The notes: generated by a model not told the origin, from the letters alone. Counted from the stretch's first letter, positions 33,236-42,400 are shown. The stretch: DNA of 64,000 bases from Guillardia theta CCMP2712 (GCF_000315625.1 NW_005434641.1:263113-327112); one strand, 5' to 3'. Made by a program: numbers and translations.

Positions 33236-34637
33236 CGTGTTAACAACCAGTCGACACGTTGACAAGACCCAATCTGCGTGGTGAGTGAGTTTAATCGTCT
33301 TTCTGCCACCTGAGAACAACTAGCAGGCCATTATGGTGTGCTTTGACGTATACAAAGTCCAAACAGGAGGGGTGACAGTTTTTCGCCTAGCAACAGAACG
33401 TGGCAAAAGAAAAGGAACAGCATGAGCGAGGAGCGTCAGGGTAAGCGGGGAGAGTGTATTTAAGAGCCAGAAGACAACAAGGGAGGATGTAGGTACACTC
33501 GATTAGCAGCATCGCCTCTGTGCGCATCATTGTCTTACCAGCAGGCCATGGCGGCTCTTCACCCCGTTTTGTAACGCTTCAGGCATACATTGTAACCGTT
33601 TGCAGCATTCACCGGCCGCGGCCCGCCCGACTCGCGATCGGACTCGCCGCCGCGTGACTCGGACGTCGGAGGCCCACACGTGACCCGGGACGGCGTCGGT
33701 GACCGTTCCGGGACTGATCGGACTCCGAGTGACCGGGCCCGCCTCCGCGTTGGAACTAGAAGCCTCTTTCAAGCCTCAGCGGCCCGGGCCTGCGGCACTG
33801 CGGCAAGTTTACTGTCACAGTGTGACGCCCCCGGATCACAGAGTCACTCATTTCAGTTTCAAGAAGGTTTCAAGTTCCCCTTCTTCAACCTCTGTGAATG
33901 ATATCAAGTTCAATCTCACTCACACAGATCACCAGCGAACCGCAAACTGTCATCAACACTGATCTGCCACCAGTCCGGGTCATGCCACCAGTCATGCTCA
34001 TTGAATCAGAATGCCACCAGTCATTCCTGCTGATTCCCTCGATCAAGACTTAGACCAAACACTGACCATAAGGATCAAATCAGAAACCTTGCCAACTCTG
34101 ACATGGCCAGGGAAATCGAAAGTTTAGACAACCGTGGCAACCTGCAATCCTTCATCCTGTCTGCCGAGATTAGATTATCACACCGCCGATACATTCCACG
34201 ACTTCATCGACCGGACTCCCGGAATGACAAAGTCTCTCTGACCCTGGAATACAACTGACACACTACTGAGTGGACTGGATTGATTTCTTCCATTGCCGCT
34301 TTGTGCCACTGCTGCAATCTACTATACACACAGCACCTGAGACTGCTCCTCTGCCTTCTCTGAAGGTCACCAGTGTCCCAGCTCCCTAGTTTGTTCCCCT
34401 ACCGTACCCTAACCCCCCTACCCCCCGAACCTCCTTCGCACGTCCCCGTACACGCGCATGTCCCCGTACACGCCCGTTTTCCGCGTCAGTCATCCTTGTG
34501 CTTTATTCATCCCTAGTGGGTTCTTATCGTTTCCTATAATCGTTGTATTACTTTGTTTTGTCTATCTGTTCTATCCGAGCCTCGGCGTCCCAGTCGCTTC
34601 CGCCTTCAAGCTCTGACGCCGCGCTCTGCTAGTCTGC

Positions 34638-34754
34638 TCATTTGCACTTGCATCGCAGCTCTCTCGGCACGTCGCCCAGCACTGACTCGACGTGCATGCC
34701 GCAGCCGGCCCAGGAGGGCTTGTTGCACTTGGTACAGGTGACCTTTCTGCACAT
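34638..34754 (-). CDS. 38-aa Cys/His-rich microprotein, copy A (MCRKVTCTKCNKPSWAGCGMHVESVLGDVPRELRCKCK)
   Basis: CCACC-ATG context, TATA at 34886-34892, AATAAA downstream; protein-level conservation with the diverged paralog at 39063. Confidence 0.88.
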   Translation of the reverse strand: MCRKVTCTKCNKPSWAGCGMHVESVLGDVPRELRCKCK

Positions 34755-35015
34755 GGTGGTTGGTGTGGAGGTGTGAGGGTAGGTAGGTAGAGGGGCGCTT
34801 GGTAGCTCTAGAGAGAAGAGGAGGGAAGAGGGTTGCTGGTGAGATACGGAGCGGGAAGTGAAGGAGAACCGGTCGAGGAGGAGGGATATATAGACGAGGG
34901 AAGGGGAAGGTCAGGGAGAAGGGGACGGTTTTTTACTACCGCTGGTCTAGAAGGTCATCGCCAGTCAGGGGAGTTATAAATTGCGGTTGAGGGCTACATG
35001 GGTGCTATTTATAGC

Positions 35016-35129
35016 GTACATTTGTACCATGAGGAGCTTCTGTATGGGGATAGCGCTGTACCAAAATGCCGTACACATGGGTCGAGATGTACCAGCATGC
35101 CCCTGCCAGCTGGTACAGTCAAATAGTAC
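35016..35129. promoter_or_regulatory. Cluster of 7 GTAC cores in the divergent promoter of copies A/B
   Basis: GTAC at 35016, 35024, 35058, 35071, 35089, 35113, 35126. Confidence 0.7.
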
Positions 35130-35430
35130 CAGAAGACATTTTATTCCCCCGTGACGCATCGTGACCTCGAGGACGGTCAGCGACCAGTCATCGACCGGTT
35201 CTCNNNNNNNNNNNNNNNNNNNNNNNNNNNNNNNNNNNNNNNNNNNNNNNNNNNNNNNNNNNNNNNNNNNNNNNNNNNNNNNNNNNNNNNNNNNNNNNNN
35301 NNNTCACTTCCACGGATCGCGAGGCAACCCTCTTCCCTCCTCTTCTCTCTAGTACTAGGAAAAGGCCTCTCTACCTATCTACCCTCACACCACCCTTCCT
35401 CCCTACCCTCACACCTTCACACCAACCACC

Positions 35431-35547
35431 ATGTGCAGAAAGGTCACCTGTACCAAGTGCAACAAGCCCTCCTGGGCCGGCTGCGGCATGCACGTCGAGT
35501 CAGTGCTGGGCGACGTGCCGAGAGAGCTGCGATGCAAGTGCAAATGA
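35431..35547 (+). CDS. 38-aa Cys/His-rich microprotein, copy B
   Basis: Identical CDS; CCACCATG; AATAAA at 35676-35681. Confidence 0.88.
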   Translation: MCRKVTCTKCNKPSWAGCGMHVESVLGDVPRELRCKCK

Positions 35548-36240
35548 GCAGACTAGCAGAGCGCGGCGTCAGAGCTTGAAGGCGGAAGCGACTGGGACCG
35601 AGGCTCGGATAGAACAGATAGACAAGACAAAGTAATACAACGATTATAGGAAACGATAAGAACCCACTAGGGATGAATAAAACCACACAATAATGATGAA
35701 TTGAGAATGCTGTCTTTACCTACTCCACATCTACCTGATCCTCGCTTCACTAGGGATGAATAAAGCACAAGGATGATTTGCGCGGGAAGCAAGCGCTCAC
35801 GGGGACATGTCAACAAGGTGTGGAGTGCGAGAGAGGGGGCAAGATGGCTTGAGAAGCTTCAGAGGCAGAGCAAGTGAAGCTTGGTTGTCTCTGTATTTCA
35901 ATTTGAGAAGATAGAACAATGTTGAAACAAATAAGCTTGTTGAGATATGGATGCTGACGCTGCCCTAGAAATTTAGTTTAGAACTGAGAAACAAGAAGGG
36001 AGTTACGCCCATTCAAAGGCTGGATTGACGACACGAGGAGTTCTATGGATCAGGCAGATGTGGAGTAGGTAAAGACAGCATTCTCAATTCATCATTATTG
36101 TGTGGTTTTATTCATCCCTAGTGGGTTCTTATCGTTTCCTATAATCGTTGTATTACTTTGTCTTGTCTATCTGTTCTATCCGAGCCTCGGTCCCAGTCGC
36201 TTCCGCCTTCAAGCTCTGACGCCGCGCTCTGCTAGTCTGC

Positions 36241-36357
36241 TCATTTGCACTTGCATCGCAGCTCTCTCGGCACGTCGCCCAGCACTGACTCGACGTGCAT
36301 GCCGCAGCCGGCCCAGGAGGGCTTGTTGCACTTGGTACAGGTGACCTTTCTGCACAT
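36241..36357 (-). CDS. 38-aa Cys/His-rich microprotein, copy C
   Basis: Identical CDS; TATA at 36489-36495. Confidence 0.88.
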   Translation of the reverse strand: MCRKVTCTKCNKPSWAGCGMHVESVLGDVPRELRCKCK

Positions 36358-36569
36358 GGTGGTTGGTGTGAGGGTAGGTAGGAAGGTTGGTGTGAGGGTA
36401 GGTAGGTAGAGGGGCGCTTGGTAGCTCTAGAGAGAAGAGGAGGGAAGAGGGTTGCTGGTGAGATGCGGAGCGGGAAAGGGGAGGAGGGATATATAGCCGG
36501 GGGAGGGATGACTGGTCGCTGACCGTCCTCGAGGTCACGATGCGTCACGGGGGAATAAAATGTCTTCTG

Positions 36570-36683
36570 GTACTATTTGACTGTACCAGCTGGCAGGGGC
36601 ATGCTGGTACATCTCGACCCATGTGTACGGCATTTTGGTACAGCGCTATCCCCATACAGAAGCTCCTCATGGTACAAATGTAC
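36570..36683. promoter_or_regulatory. Mirror cluster of 7 GTAC cores in the divergent promoter of copies C/D
   Basis: GTAC at 36570, 36583, 36607, 36625, 36638, 36672, 36680. Confidence 0.7.
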
Positions 36684-36962
36684 GCTATAAATAGCACCCA
36701 TGTAGCCCTCAACCGCAATTTATAACTCCCCTGACTGGCGATGACCTTCTAGACCAGCGGTAGTAAAAAACCGTCCCCTTCTCCCTGACCTTCCCCTTCC
36801 CTCGTCTATATATCCCTCCTCCTCGACCGGTTCTCCTTCACTTCCACATCTCACCAGCAACCCTCTTCCCTCCTCTTCTCTCTAGAGCTACCAAGCGCCC
36901 CTCTACCTACCTACCCTCACACCAACCTTCCTACCTACCCTCACACCTTCACACCAACCACC

Positions 36963-37079
36963 ATGTGCAGAAAGGTCACCTGTACCAAGTGCAACAAGCC
37001 CTCCTGGGCCGGCTGCGGCATGCACGTCGAGTCAGTGCTGGGCGACGTGCCGAGAGAGCTGCGATGCAAGTGCAAATGA
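36963..37079 (+). CDS. 38-aa Cys/His-rich microprotein, copy D
   Basis: Identical CDS; TATATAT at 36807-36813, Inr-like TCACTT ~30 nt downstream; AATAAA at 37202-37207. Confidence 0.88.
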   Translation: MCRKVTCTKCNKPSWAGCGMHVESVLGDVPRELRCKCK

Positions 37080-39062
37080 GCAGACTAGCAGAGCGCGGCG
37101 TCAGAGCTTGAAGGCGGAAGCGACTGGGACGAGAACAGATAGACAAGACAAAGTAATACCGTTGAACGATTATAGGAAACGATAAGAACCCACTAGGGAT
37201 GAATAAAGCACAAGGATGACTGACGCGGCAAGCGAGCCTGGCATGCCATCATGTACGAAGATCTCTAGTGTCCCAACTCCCTAGCTCCTCCCCCCCCCAC
37301 CCCCTGGCTTCCCCGGCACTGCCAGACCCGCCGGGACACTGTGTGTTTCACAGTGTACTGAGGAAGCAATCAATCCAGTCCACTCAGTACTGTAGTGCTT
37401 TGTATTTTCAGGGGCAGTGAAACTCGCCAAGATCCGATCCGATCGGGTTGCGACTAGCCTCCTCATCTCCGATGATCCGACCGGGACTCGGAGCCTGAGA
37501 CAGGCTCACAGAGTCAGTCCGCCGGGCGTCCGGCCCGGCGGCCCGACACCGGGTCCGACGGCCGGTCCGATCAGTTCTGACTTCGTTCATTGACCCTCTC
37601 AGTGAACCGTTCGGAACGGTTCATCGGATACTCGGAGGCTCAGTGACTACCGTCACGGAGCCTCGGAGGGTGGGTACGGTAAAGAAGCCTTTAAGATGAG
37701 AGTCTTTTTGACTGAAGTACAGCACAGAAATGCCACACAGTAGTGACTCAGTGGCAACTTGTGAGTCACCGTGCCTGAGGCCCCCGGGCCCACAAGTTGG
37801 TTCCGATCGGTCGGTTTAGTGAACTTCGGCGGAGTCAAAGTCACCGACGGTCGGACCGTACACTGAGTGGTGGCAGTCACCCGGCCCCGGGCCGGGCGTC
37901 GGGCCGCGGCAAACAACTTAGTGACTTGCCAACGCCGGTCAACTCAGTTGGGTGTCAACTTGAGTGACTTCACTGGACTCGAGTTCGGAACGACTGCAAG
38001 GAGCGGGGATGAGGTCACCGATCATCACAGAGATTGTGAGACCCCACCCCTCCTCTCTACCACATTTACCACCCTACCCTCGTATGTCTTACACCCTACC
38101 CATCCCTATCAAGCCCTACTCCAACAGATTTCTGATCAACCACCATCGGTGGTAAAGGTAAGTCGAATGCACACCCGTAGTATTATCTACCCTCACCATA
38201 TTATTTATGGTGTTTGGTACCCACCTTTTCATATACTTGTCTTCCTCGGATGATCACCCCTACCCCCTTTTCCCTACAGTGTTGAAGTTTTTGCTTCCAC
38301 TACCCCTCCGTACCCACAATCACCATCGACCAGAGTAACCTCCACCCCACCCCTTGAATGTAAGGTTGTGCCTGGGGTGTAGAATGTAGCAGGTAAATGG
38401 GGGTTATTGCATGGCATTTGGTGGGTGGTAAGGGGGGTGGGATGGGGGATCAAGGAGGAGTTCAAAAGCAGGACACGGAGGGTGGGAGCGTGGGGATGCG
38501 ACAGTGCGAGAGGGGAGGGGAGGGGAGGGGAGGAGAGGATAGTAGAGGAGAGGAGAGGACAGGGCAGGGCAGGGCAGGACAGGGCAGGACAGGACAGGGC
38601 AGGGCAGGAGAGGACAGGAGAGTAGAGGACAGGATAGTATAGGAGGGCAGGACAGTCGCAGAAGTATGAGTAAATGGAGCACAGGTCATATGAGAGGAAC
38701 CTGTTGAAACTTTCGGATGCTGATGAGATAATAGAAGAGATTCAATGCATAAACAAAATGGATCCAGGCCTGTCTCCCCCTATTTTGGCAATACCTGATT
38801 GGGGAAGTGCTCAAGATGAGTTAATCGAAGATTTCGTGGATTGAACAGTTTCCAATGTATCAAGTGTATGCTCAAAACGAAAGAAGAAACAAGTATGTTG
38901 TATCCCTGAATGATCTCGTGGAACATAGCTGTTGAGAGCAACGAGGCTAGATGCTGACAGGAAACCAGAGTATCCAAATTAGAAATTGCTGCTCCAACTT
39001 TCGTGGTCATTCCAGACTTAATCCTGACGCTACTTGTTTCAGTTTCTTCGAAGAATCCCAAC

Positions 39063-39227
39063 ATGTGTATGAGAGTAACCTGCACGAAATGCAACAAGCC
39101 CTCCTGGGTCGGTTGCGGTCAGTGCAAGGTACAGGATACATTGACCCGCTGACGATTTTCGGCAGGAATGCACGTCGAACAGGTGTTGGGGGATGTTCCC
39201 AAGGATCAGAGGTGCAAGTGTAAATAG
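39063..39227 (+). CDS. Intron-containing paralog E of the microprotein (MCMRVTCTKCNKPSWVGCGMHVEQVLGDVPKDQRCKCK)
   Basis: Exons 39063-39117 and 39166-39227; 48-nt intron GTCAGT...GCTGAC...GGCAG; all 6 Cys plus W and H conserved, many synonymous changes. Confidence 0.88.
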
Positions 39228-39486: not shown

Positions 39487-42400
39487 TCAACTCCTCAACA
39501 GGTGAAGGAGGTCGATTGCTGTGCTCTTGATCAGACTGCTGACTTGCCTCTGCGTGGCTGCATCGACATCAGCCTTGGCCCTGTCCCCCTTCTTCGTCTT
39601 CCTGCCACCTTTCGTCCTGTTCTTCTTGTCACTGTGCCCGTTGACACTGCCAAGGAGCGGGTGGTACTTGATGGGTGCCTCCTCCACTGAACATCCCTCC
39701 CCGCTCTGAAGATTCTGTTCTGCACCATCGTCGACTATCTCCTCCAACTCCAGCAGGTCACTCTCTTTGGCAGACCTCTTGGCCTTTGCCGGTAGGATGA
39801 GATCCAGGATGGAGTTTGACAAGGGCTTAACTAGCGGCTTCGGGGTAAGGTTGTTCTTCTCGTTGTACGCCAGCTGAAGCCTCCTCCTCCTCTCTGTCTC
39901 TGCGATGGCTCGAGCCATCGAGTTGGTGACTGTCTCGCAGTAGAGGATGACAGTCCCGTTCACGTTCCTCGACGCTCTGCCGATGGTCTGGATGAGGCTG
40001 CGGTCGCTGCGGAGGAAACCCTCCTTGTCTGCGTCCAAGATGGCAACGAGCGAGACCTCGGGGATATCGAGGCCCTCGCGCAGGAGGTTGACGCCTACAA
40101 GCACGTCGATCTTGCCAGCGCGCAGGGCGTGAACGATCTTGAGCCTCTCCATTGACTTCACCTCTGAGTGCAGCCATGCTGCCTTGAGGTCATGGTCCCT
40201 GAGGAAGCTCGAGACCTCCTCCGCCGTCCTCTTGGTCAAGGTTGTGATCAGTACCCTCTCCCTCCTCGATATTCTCTGCAGGATCTCCTTGAGGAGATCG
40301 TCCACCTGCCCTACCGCGCTCCTCGTGTGAACGATCGGGTCAAGGATGCCCGTGGGCCTGATGATCAGCTCCGTCACCTCCTCCATGCTTGCATCGCCGC
40401 TCCTGCACAACGAACTCTGGGGGTATCAGAGTCAGACGCGGTGCTGTAGAGTTTCAGCTGGGCACCTGCTGAAGCTCCCACTGCCCAGGGGTGGCGGAGA
40501 CGAAGATGCACTGGTGGACTCTGGACCAGAACTCTTCCTCCTGCAGCGGGCGGTTGTCGAGCGCGGAAGGGAGGCGGAAGCCATGGCGAACAAGCGTCTC
40601 CTTCCTCATCCTGTCTCCGAAGTACATGCCTCGAACTTGAGGGACCGTGATGTGAGACTCGTCGACGATGAGCAGCCAGTCCTTGCAGAAGGGGGTGAGG
40701 GGAGCACGGCGAGGGAGGGATTCACCTCATGGGGGAAGTAGTCGACAAGGCAGTCCGGAGGCTCTCCGGCCTTCCGACCGGACAAATGCCGGGCGTAGTT
40801 CTCGATGGAGCGACAGTATCCTACCGCCTCGATCTGCATCAGGTCTGACTCTGTCCTCTGAGTCAGCCGCTCTGCCTCCAGGAAGGAGCCTTTCTCCTAC
40901 AACCCACGTCAGGCAACACAGGAGAAGCAGACCCGGCTGTTACCTCCAACTCCGCCACCCTATCGTAGAGCTCAGTCCTGATCTCATGCAGAATCCTCTG
41001 CTTGTCTTCCGACGACGTGACGAAGTGGCTGGCCGGGTAGATCACGATCTCGCTGATGTTCCTATTCGACTCTTTGGCCTCGTTTGCCTCCTCCTTTGCT
41101 CCCTTCATCAGGACTTGAGCTGGGGAGGAGCTGGCTTCGGAGGTGGAAGCAGGAGAATGACTCTCTTCTTCCTGTATGCGACTCACGTAAAACCCGTCAG
41201 CCGCCGAGAGGTTCTGCGCGACGGCCGAGCGCCGAAAGAAAACTCTCAAGATGCTGTCGGTGTGGGAGGGCCCGATCAACAAGCAACCTTGTTCCTCATC
41301 CGACAGTGCACCTCCTCCCTCCTTGTCTCCACGAGCCTTCGCTCCGTCGCTGAGCACGTAGATCTGTCCTCTGCTGATCGCAGGGCTGAGCTCGTTCGAC
41401 ACGTAGTGGAGGAGGCGAAGTTTGGAGGCCAAGGCGAGGGGGGAGCACTGGGCCCCCACGTGGAGGAGGAGGGAGTTTCTGAGGTACTCCGACGGCATTC
41501 CTAACCCGTAGATGCAGCTGACGCTAGCGACGACAACTGTGTCTCGTCGCTCGAAGAGGGAGCGAGTGGCCGAGTGCCGCAAGCGGTCGATGTCGTCGTT
41601 GACAACTGAGACCTTGTCCACGAACACGTCGGAGACGGCGAGGTAAGCTTCGGGCCTGTAGTAGTCGTAGTAGGACACGAAGTACTCCACCGCATTGTTG
41701 GGGAACAGCTCCTTCAGCTCGTTGCACAGCTGGGCTGCGAGCATCTTGTTGGGGGCGAGGATGAGCGTCGGTTTCTGATGCTGGACGATCACGTTGGCCA
41801 TTACGAAAGTTTTGCCCGTGCCTGTGGCTCCCAGGAGGGTCTGAAAGCGGAGGCTCTGCCGCAGGCCCGTCACAAGCTGCTCGATTGCCTTGGGCTGGTC
41901 GCCGCACGGGGAGAAAGGGGAGAAGAGGATGAAACGGTCGTCTCCTCTCGGTCTCCTGTCGTGCCCGGGGAAAGAGAACCCCATCTGCCTCCTCTGCTTC
42001 CCCTCGGACGCCAGGACTCCCTCCTGCTCCTTGAGCAGGTCAAGCTTCCCTTCCCCCAACTTCTCCAGCTCGTCCCACGTCAGCACGCGTCCTCCTGCGC
42101 TCCTCACCTTAGCGACAGCAGCAGAGTCAGCGGCAGCTCGAGTGAGCACGAGGAGGAGCTGGAAGCTGGTGTCTGCGAGGGGACGGCCGGTGAACCCAAC
42201 CTGCTGCTGGAGTTGTGGTGGGATGTCGAGGAAGAATCGGGACCGCTGGGAGACAAACTCCTTCTTGACATCGATGTTGCCGAACCTCCCCCTGGTCCTC
42301 CTCCTCCAGCTGAAGTAGAGGTGGTCCCTGGCTCGGGTGCAGGCCACGTAGACTAGCCTCCTCTCCTCTGCTATCTCGATGTCGTCGGTGAGAGATCGCT

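Follow-up and report, generated by a model that had tools for sequence, protein, structure and literature searches.

Does the region between positions 34,638 and 39,227 of the 64,000-nt stretch of DNA analysed here (the window), from the cryptophyte alga Guillardia theta CCMP2712, encode a genuine set of Cys/His-rich microproteins, and what could such small peptides do? The ORF list revealed four intronless ORFs of 38 codons, located exactly where the first-pass annotation had placed them and encoding one and the same 38-amino-acid product: copies A (34638-34754, minus strand), B (35431-35547, plus strand), C (36241-36357, minus strand) and D (36963-37079, plus strand), with stop codons included. 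When the four units were aligned, not one letter differed in the coding sequences or in some 70 nt of 3' flank; the untranslated regions vary by indels. A spliced paralog, E, had also been predicted at 39063-39227 on the plus strand. The coding part of its exon 1 (39063-39117) holds codons 1-18 and the first base of the Gly19 codon, and is followed by a 48-nt GT..AG intron in phase 1 (39118-39165) and by the coding part of exon 2 (39166-39227), which ends in a TAG stop. The intron is backed by RNA, as 9 raw reads with 7 different start points, together with one 686-nt contig, cross the splice junction (39116/39165, cut +1). The five genes initially described are therefore all present, but the family is larger than had been thought, since a sixth gene, the spliced paralog F, was found about 190 kb away on the minus strand of the same contig (G000:C33:108203-108533), giving six nuclear loci in the genome, five of them inside the window. 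The intron of F lies in the same codon phase as that of E, and its C-terminus is longer. Paralogs E and F were searched and compared exon by exon and not as joined proteins.

Transcripts were found on the strand expected for these genes, and at a high level. In 6% of one run, plus-strand RNA depth over copy D reached about 1400 and was zero beyond 37276; the mRNA of D extends from approximately 36850 to 37240, and a 412-nt contig covers 36855-37207. The sense-strand call of the reads is based on strand calibration by the GT..AG intron of paralog E. A letter specific to the 5'UTR of copy B, a T at the place matching 36910, was present in 348 of 581 RNA reads, indicating that copy B is transcribed. 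For copy C, minus-strand reads were found over the 5'UTR (36358-36459), and a 3'UTR of the B/C type was detected in loose ends. The comparison between D and E showed saturated synonymous sites (pS 0.85) and conserved replacement sites (pN 0.095), in agreement with the earlier proposal of purifying selection on a real peptide, and the dN/dS between E and F was approximately 0.1. An opposite reading would treat the ORFs as having arisen by chance in a repeat that is transcribed but non-coding, or that derives from a transposon. The copies do lie in a palindromic repeat beside an assembly gap, and the exact 38-amino-acid product is absent from public gene calls, a set which may leave out the records of this genome. 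Nevertheless, hundreds of bacterial and eukaryotic homologs keep the Cys/His pattern, the differences between paralogs are mainly synonymous, the intron position is common to E and F, and no further copies of the repeat were found elsewhere in the genome. A chance ORF or repeat artefact was ruled out by the homologs, their conserved Cys/His pattern and the D-E pS and pN values, and the probability left to a non-functional element is close to nil. We therefore regard these as real genes, whose expression, splicing, selective constraint and wide conservation are all documented here.

The arrangement of the four identical copies is that of a palindrome of about 2.8 kb (34457-37240), in which A-promoter-B is mirrored as C-promoter-D, as established by inverted repeats I1, I2, I5 and I8 and the alignment of the four units. 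Copy A matches D, copy B matches C, and a 305-nt spacer (35742-36046) separates the two halves. The head-to-head promoter between A and B (34755-35430) contains the TATATA box of A at 34887, while that between C and D (36358-36962) contains the boxes of C at 36490 and of D at 36807 and shows RNA starts on both strands. The TATA boxes reported for A, C and D were therefore found again, but the location of the box of B within the assembly gap is only one of two options. The gap occupies 35204-35303 of the A/B promoter, ending 127 nt before the ATG of B, and no family ORF crosses or touches it. Its flanks match consecutive positions of the proximal promoter of D with only 2 nt missing. The true gap may therefore be tiny, in which case copy B would be devoid of a TATA box; the alternative is that the gap contains the box.

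An array of seven GTAC cores (35016-35129) was identified midway along the A/B promoter, with a mirror copy in the C/D promoter (36570-36683), the two 339-nt arms being 100% complementary. Seven cores per approximately 115 nt, where 0.31 would be expected per 120 nt (Poisson P ~4e-8), make this the densest place for GTAC in the window. Each head-to-head pair would be driven by its shared GTAC-array promoter, and jointly the pairs yield an mRNA of about 400 nt in great abundance. In green algae, SBP-domain factors bind copper-response elements that have GTAC as their core, and the duplicated array would suit a metal buffer or chaperone whose six Cys and single His bind Cu(I) or several Zn ions, with expression following metal supply through GTAC (CuRE-like) elements in the alga and CsoR-family repressors in bacteria. 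The SBP domain (PF03110), in turn, gave no match at E<=0.001 in the six frames of the alga genome, which speaks against such control, although this is a weak test given the introns of the genome and control genomes without the family. A literature search on copper work in the alga found none. All evidence considered, including the composition of the peptide and its gene context in bacteria described below, a metal-buffering role is unlikely.

Homologs of the peptide in bacteria and fungi, which the first-pass annotation had mentioned, do exist and keep the Cys/His pattern. A phmmer search of 1.8 billion representatives retrieved 642 representatives at 50% identity (E<=1e-3, with values down to 2e-12), and a wider homolog search yielded 1680 clusters at 90% identity. 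Members come from two bacterial groups, Actinomycetota and Myxococcota, from chytrid and zoopagomycete fungi, and from a chrysophyte as well as the present alga. The domain follows the pattern M-C-x4-C-x2-C-x-K-P-x-W-x-G-C-G-x-H ... R-C-x-C, and the 38-residue algal protein is its minimal form. Among 98 aligned members, C7, C10 and H21 are invariant, and M1, C2, G17, C18, G19, L26, R34 and C35 are conserved in at least 90%; Cys37 is conserved less than the other cysteines. All named members are labelled hypothetical. Pfam and NCBIfam scans of the 38-residue peptide gave zero matches at E<=10, a profile search of PDB sequences gave chance matches only (E>0.6), and a literature search for a published description of this microprotein family found none. 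Judged by its Met1-Cys2 start and its Cys/His pattern, the algal peptide is a member of a family that has no Pfam or NCBIfam model, name or structure. Microproteins of this length are routinely missed in annotation, and this one lacks a model in spite of its high expression, its several gene copies and a conservation that reaches from Actinomycetota to algae and fungi.

Structure prediction with AF2 gave an ordered model (pLDDT 89), composed of a hairpin with strands at residues 3-6 and 13-16 and a helix at residues 22-25. The C7/C10 pair is placed at the hairpin turn as a CxxC knuckle, and C18/H21 (C-x2-H) just before or at the start of the helix; since AF2 places no metal, the ligand assignment is based on the motif and the predicted secondary structure. 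ESM-Atlas models of members from Actinomycetota and Myxococcota superpose at TM 0.91-0.94. The previous suggestion of a small zinc finger or zinc ribbon is compatible with this predicted fold. As in the treble-clef and zinc-ribbon mini fingers, such as the single-domain microproteins of archaea and bacteria and the 38-residue CCCH ribosomal protein bL36, the domain is shorter than 70 residues, and it is predicted to combine a CxxC knuckle at the turn of a beta-hairpin and a C-x2-H at the helix start with one structural Zn. It differs from these fingers by an additional N-terminal Met-Cys and C-terminal R-C-x-C, by the lack of any significant sequence or fold match, and by a ligand spacing that fits no named family. 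The Foldseek search against the PDB retrieved only CW-type zinc fingers, the histone-reading domain, with insignificant scores (best E 2.5, TM 0.36), and VIA-align wide returned nothing at Z>=2. The CW domain resembles the predicted mini-domain in its four-ligand zinc site and the conserved Trp after the knuckle, but is longer and has four Cys and several Trp.

A structural zinc-finger adaptor, which would bind protein or nucleic acid without sulfur or metal chemistry of its own, is consistent with several of these features. The predicted architecture is treble-clef-like, a type common in binding modules; the only Foldseek matches, insignificant as they are, were CW-type zinc fingers; the peptide is basic (8 Lys/Arg vs 3 Asp/Glu); and in one fusion protein, an OTU1-type deubiquitinase, the domain takes the place of the module normally found at the N-terminus. 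This fusion is nonetheless a single case, and the conservation of M1-C2 at the extreme N-terminus and of C35 goes beyond the four ligands of a plain zinc finger.

The composition of the peptide bears in turn on the metal-buffering role. Seven potential ligands in 38 residues and one ESM-Atlas cluster of the family automatically named 'Metallothionein family protein' favour it. Metallothioneins, however, contain approximately 25-30% Cys in C-C or C-x-C clusters, have few aromatic residues and adopt no stable fold without metal, whereas the peptide has 6 Cys in 38 residues (16%), conserves Trp15 along with Gly, Pro and His, and is predicted to be ordered. No metallothionein family of Pfam matched the peptide; ten longer homologs scanned against Pfam likewise gave nothing relevant and no metallothionein family. 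MymT, the small copper metallothionein of mycobacteria, is controlled by a CsoR paralog, and the bacterial members of the present family resemble metallothioneins of this type in being small, Cys-rich and placed behind a CsoR-family operator; they differ in their lower Cys density, in having no C-C or repeated C-x-C clusters, and in their conserved aromatic, Gly and Pro residues. The metallothionein-like chelator put forward initially is thus not supported.

Genomic context analyses were carried out on 80 bacterial loci, gathered with a narrower alignment (A2) that is biased to Acidimicrobiia-type sequences, as the broad alignment (A1) had no stretch conserved enough for a locus search. To derive neighbour families in spite of spurious high-GC ORFs, clustering stricter than single linkage was combined with phmmer seeds and a census of Pfam domains. 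The loci are phylogenetically clustered, mostly in Acidimicrobiia, so that the counts over the 80 loci are not independent events. In 56 of them, a CsoR/CstR-type operator, TACCC-N4-GGGGTA, is located at exactly -13 and overlaps the ATG, and 59 of 76 hits of this motif in 548 kb are found at microprotein genes. The operator nearly matches the experimentally used cst operator of S. mitis (PMC8643695). Thirty-four of the 80 loci adjoin a gene for an MBL-rhodanese protein (persulfide dioxygenase type), a Pyr_redox_2-rhodanese protein (CoA persulfide reductase type; CoA-disulfide-reductase-rhodanese) or a CsoR-family regulator; the two rhodanese fusions are found at about 30 loci, and rhodanese is the commonest immediate neighbour (17 of 148 ORFs). 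In Myxococcota, the microprotein gene lies directly 5' of a reductase-rhodanese gene on the same strand, and in a complete 2.4-Mb Acidimicrobiia genome the sole CsoR-family gene is directly downstream of the microprotein gene. The operator is absent from 24 of the 80 loci and sulfur-related neighbours from 46, and one Myxococcales and one Streptomyces-like locus showed no link to the operator or to sulfur genes.

The linked CsoR-family regulators carry Gly in place of the copper-ligand His in 16 of 16 cases (x-C-x-C), as in CstR, and their best PDB match is the CstR of S. pneumoniae (7MQ1). These observations weigh against metal buffering, as does the absence of HMA and P-type ATPase families among the 25 commonest neighbour families, the neighbours being persulfide enzymes. 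On the other side, the operator is of the general CsoR-family type, and some of the same genomes carry copper-type and CstR-type paralogs together, either of which could bind it. The length of the operator was considered as a discriminator between copper and cst types and rejected: it spans 14 nt at the microprotein genes and at one cst-like cluster and 15 nt at two copper-type csoR genes, but these are too few cases, and a span of 15 is also that of the cst operator in S. mitis. Taken together, the bacterial gene context points to persulfide and thiol stress, with a regulon of the CstR type, and less to genes for metal efflux or metal chaperones. The likeness to the CstR regulon of Gram-positive bacteria (CstR, the persulfide dioxygenase-rhodanese CstB, CoA persulfide reductase, and rhodanese and TusA sulfur carriers) concerns the enzyme types that adjoin the bacterial homologs, the x-C-x-C regulator and the cst-like operator on the start codon, although the microprotein itself resembles no known cst gene product. 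At many loci the microprotein and regulator genes are co-oriented with a gap of 50-240 nt, an arrangement that would also suit an adaptor modulating the co-transcribed CstR-type repressor or another abundant partner. Such a partner is hypothetical, and we regard the adaptor as improbable.

The interpretation that we favour, albeit tentatively and as a possibility somewhat short of probable, is that of a mini-domain which is stabilised by zinc, carries a pair of terminal thiols and has its role in stress from reactive sulfur or in thiol stress. The peptide would fold around one Zn(II) as a treble-clef-like mini zinc finger, with Cys7 and Cys10 forming the knuckle of the beta-hairpin and Cys18 and His21 at the start of the short helix. 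Removal of Met would leave Cys2 N-terminal, and Cys35, plus Cys37, could lie near enough to form a reactive thiol pair with it, which would take up or pass on sulfane sulfur or else react with further thiol oxidants. On this model the protein serves to buffer or relay when cells respond to sulfide, persulfide or thiol stress, and in bacteria a CstR-type persulfide sensor is predicted to repress the gene and to release it once persulfidated. The zinc site, the sulfur chemistry and the thiol pair are inferences, as is the extension to the alga of what the bacterial context suggests; the alga has no CstR and no such gene neighbourhood, and we know of no CstR in eukaryotes.

A broader and more doubtful proposition is that bacteria and eukaryotes have in common a microprotein handling reactive sulfur, a one-zinc mini-finger whose N- and C-terminal Cys take sulfane sulfur, which would be a core CstR target operated at the start codon in Actinomycetota and would have been kept in chytrids, zoopagomycetes, chrysophytes and cryptophytes, with six highly expressed genes and a GTAC-array promoter in Guillardia. 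From the bacterial context comes a testable hypothesis, that of a component of the sulfide/persulfide response under CstR control. If true, reactive-sulfur biology would gain a new player, and the function of the eukaryotic members, among them those of Batrachochytrium salamandrivorans, a pathogen of amphibians, could be approached for the first time. Each of the six algal genes begins with Met-Cys, and in eukaryotes an exposed N-terminal Cys could tie the stability of the protein to oxygen or NO.

The four identical intronless ORFs described in the first-pass annotation were recovered as copies A (34638-34754, minus strand), B (35431-35547, plus), C (36241-36357, minus) and D (36963-37079, plus), and all of them translate into the same 38-aa product. 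A and B stand head to head, as do C and D, and repeat analysis revealed that the block from 34457 to 37240 is a palindrome as a whole, in which the unit A-promoter-B is mirrored as C-promoter-D (A being the counterpart of D, and B that of C). The arms flank a 305-nt spacer and share a 339-nt promoter segment with 100% complementarity. When the four transcription units were aligned, the coding sequence (117 nt) and about 70 nt 3' of the stop proved identical, and several indels distinguish the 5' and 3' UTRs. A TATATA element lies approximately 130-155 nt 5' of the ATG of A, C and D, while AATAAA is present downstream of every one of the four genes.

The spliced paralog E has its first coding exon at 39063-39117, a 48-nt GT..AG intron at 39118-39165 and a second exon that begins at 39166 and is closed by the TAG at 39225-39227. 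Whole-genome search revealed a sixth gene, the spliced paralog F, on the same contig (G000:C33:108203-108533, minus strand); its 220-nt GT..AG intron interrupts the Gly19 codon in the same phase as that of E, and its tail is about ten residues longer. A profile search of the genome found no members beyond these, and the family in the alga, initially counted at five genes, thus comprises six, all on one contig. The intron common to E and F is absent from the four identical copies, and we infer that the latter arose through intron loss or as a processed copy and were then duplicated locally in inverted orientation. Between the repeat block and E is a purine-rich microsatellite of ~185 nt (38476-38660) built of 5-nt units (GGGAG/CAGGG/CAGGA), at which contigs from RNA runs break. 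Directly 3' of E, on the opposite strand, a 307-aa ORF (39487-40410, minus) encodes what we take to resemble the C-terminal helicase part of UvrB.

Comparison of D with E and of E with F, performed exon by exon with the split codon left out, bore out the proposal that purifying selection acts on a real peptide. Between D and E, 18.5 of 21.8 synonymous sites differ, against only 8.5 of 89.2 replacement sites, and dN/dS between E and F is about 0.1. D and E show no relationship in the 100 nt that flank them on each side; conservation is of the peptide and not of the nucleotide sequence.

Exhaustive phmmer searching of 1.84 billion representatives retrieved 642 proteins at E<=1e-3 (best match 2e-12, 73% identity), nearly all of which carry the domain at the extreme N-terminus. 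In one protein the domain is fused to an OTU protease. A profile search of a 5.8-billion collection gave 1680 clusters within the size range of 23-73 aa; these are devoid of Pfam domains, and those with a name are all called 'hypothetical protein'. The carriers include Acidimicrobiia and other Actinomycetota (among them a Streptomyces-like strain), Myxococcota, Acidobacteriota and Oligoflexia. Eukaryotic carriers include the chrysophyte Chlorochromonas danica and three fungi, Dispira parvispora, Cladochytrium replicatum and Batrachochytrium salamandrivorans, of which B. salamandrivorans has several paralogs. Among 98 aligned domains, C7, C10 and H21 are invariant and M1, C2, G17, C18, G19, L26, R34 and C35 are conserved at 90% or more, C37 being less conserved. 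No characterisation of the family was found in Pfam, NCBIfam, PDB or the literature searched, and it may be described in other papers. The product of the alga is the bare domain, whereas most bacterial members have an extra tail of 15-30 residues. In many bacterial members (P0004, P0019, P0028, P0059, P0097 and others) a short aromatic-basic C-terminal tail is found (such as ...WFSR, ...LFRR or ...RLFSK), which is missing from the 38-aa version and could represent a short amphipathic or docking motif.

The AlphaFold2 model obtained with the family alignment was confident (pLDDT 89) and consists of a beta-hairpin (residues 3-6 and 13-16) and a short helix (22-25). Superposition of Atlas models of family members gave TM 0.91-0.94. 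In a treble-clef zinc finger, a knuckle in the hairpin turn is combined with a second ligand pair just before the helix; likewise, the model places C7 and C10 in the hairpin turn and C18 and H21 just before the helix, while C2 and C35/C37 remain at the two ends, outside this set. Sequence and structure searches of the PDB gave no significant match among solved structures. The microprotein of the alga is probably a one-zinc mini-finger. It might serve purely as a binding module, a role that we regard as rather unlikely.

The genomic context was analyzed in 80 bacterial loci retrieved with a narrow family profile, a set of non-independent loci drawn predominantly from one class. Clustering of neighboring ORFs and Pfam scans revealed an adjoining, divergently transcribed gene for a metallo-beta-lactamase plus triple-rhodanese protein, the same architecture as in CstB-type persulfide dioxygenase-rhodanese fusions. 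Directly 3' of the microprotein gene, Myxococcota carry on the same strand a gene for a pyridine-nucleotide-disulfide-reductase plus rhodanese protein, with the architecture of CoA persulfide reductase, and Acidimicrobiia carry a CsoR-family repressor gene. According to phmmer seeds, at least one of these three neighbor types occurs at 34 of the 80 loci, sulfur-related neighbors being absent from many; among 148 immediate neighbors scanned with Pfam, the Rhodanese family ranked first (17) and Lactamase_B second (10). All 16 linked regulators retain both Cys and have Gly in place of the His ligand of copper-sensing CsoR, and their best PDB match is 7MQ1, the CstR of S. pneumoniae (PMC8643695). 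An x-C-x-C fingerprint and sulfide-detoxification neighborhoods are the marks of persulfide sensors (PMC8643695). In a complete 2.4-Mb Acidimicrobiia genome, the single CsoR-family gene adjoins the microprotein gene.

Upstream, a palindrome, TACCC-N4-GGGGTA, starts at exactly -13 and runs into the ATG at 56 of the 80 loci, being absent from the other 24, and 59 of its 76 matches in 548 kb are upstream of a microprotein gene. It is almost identical to the S. mitis cst operator core, as taken from a binding-assay sequence. Because of this operator and the regulator evidence, the bacterial homologs are predicted to be direct targets of a CstR-type repressor, even where no regulator gene is adjacent; in some genomes a copper-type paralog coexists with a CstR-type one, and their operators are too alike for assignment. 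Since the palindrome extends as far as the AT of the start codon (-13 to +2 in 56 of loci L009-L088), no room is left for a Shine-Dalgarno sequence; leaderless mRNAs are one possibility, location of the operator within a 5'UTR another. In a Streptomyces-like genome, the microprotein gene is preceded, at a distance of 45 nt and in the same orientation, by a DUF302 gene (L089 4567-4956).

The peptide is thus a real, selected and conserved Cys/His microprotein. With the context taken from the bacterial homologs, the best-supported mechanism, put forward tentatively and at somewhat less than even chance, is that a zinc-held scaffold would display the Cys2/Cys35 thiol pair, which would work in reactive-sulfur or thiol stress. 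Metal buffering by the peptide is likewise regarded as rather unlikely. The earlier interpretation is right in part: the conserved peptide stands, on the homologs and the D/E and E/F site comparisons, but the metallothionein idea lacks support.

Expression was analyzed in the raw reads of a stranded RNA run, of which only 6% was read. RNA depth, which is the sum over identical copies, reached approximately 1400 over D. Coverage over D begins near 36850, about 40 nt past the TATA box, and stops shortly past AATAAA near 37240, thus indicating an mRNA of about 400 nt; by rough arithmetic, approximately 8000 of 19.8 million reads fall on this 0.4-kb transcript, which puts expression in the region of a thousand reads per kilobase per million. 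The predicted splice junction of E was confirmed by 9 reads, which start at 7 different positions, and by one independent older contig. As the E intron reads GT..AG on the plus strand and the first mates of E reads are also on plus, the first mate reads the RNA's own strand in this library; with this calibration, transcription follows the ORF sense at D and runs on the minus strand over the 5'UTR of C. Loose read ends reproduced the B/C-type 3'UTR and the A/B/C-type 13-nt insertion, indicating that at least three distinct copies are expressed. Two RNA letters occur in none of the four assembled copies (37108 T>G in 120 of 1183 reads; 36954 C>A in 40 of 377), and might reflect additional copies missing from the assembly, allelic variants or divergence between strains. 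Upstream of E, 219 reads carry about 15 unmatched letters just 5' of 39041, beside a pyrimidine-rich ...tttcag acceptor (39030-39045), which could represent a 5'UTR intron or library adaptor; older contigs are unspliced from 38656 onward.

The center of each bidirectional promoter contains a GTAC array (35016-35129 and 36570-36683) of seven cores in ~115 nt, mostly TGGTAC or TGTAC, and these clusters are the densest in the 64-kb window (P ~4e-8). No SBP-domain gene, as a candidate for the GTAC-binding factor, was detected in the genome of the alga, this being a weak test. The A/B promoter is interrupted by an N run (35204-35303), 127 nt upstream of the ATG of B, which no family ORF crosses; long ORFs drawn through it, in other frames, are artefacts. 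The left flank of the gap aligns to the mirrored C/D promoter up to where the TATA segment of C would come, while its last 11-13 letters and the entire right flank match consecutive positions of the D proximal promoter, with 2 nt missing. Two readings remain: the true gap may be a few bases, leaving copy B without a TATA box, or the join may be imperfect, with the TATA of B in unread sequence. Copy B is transcribed, since its diagnostic 5'UTR letter is present in 348 of 581 RNA reads.
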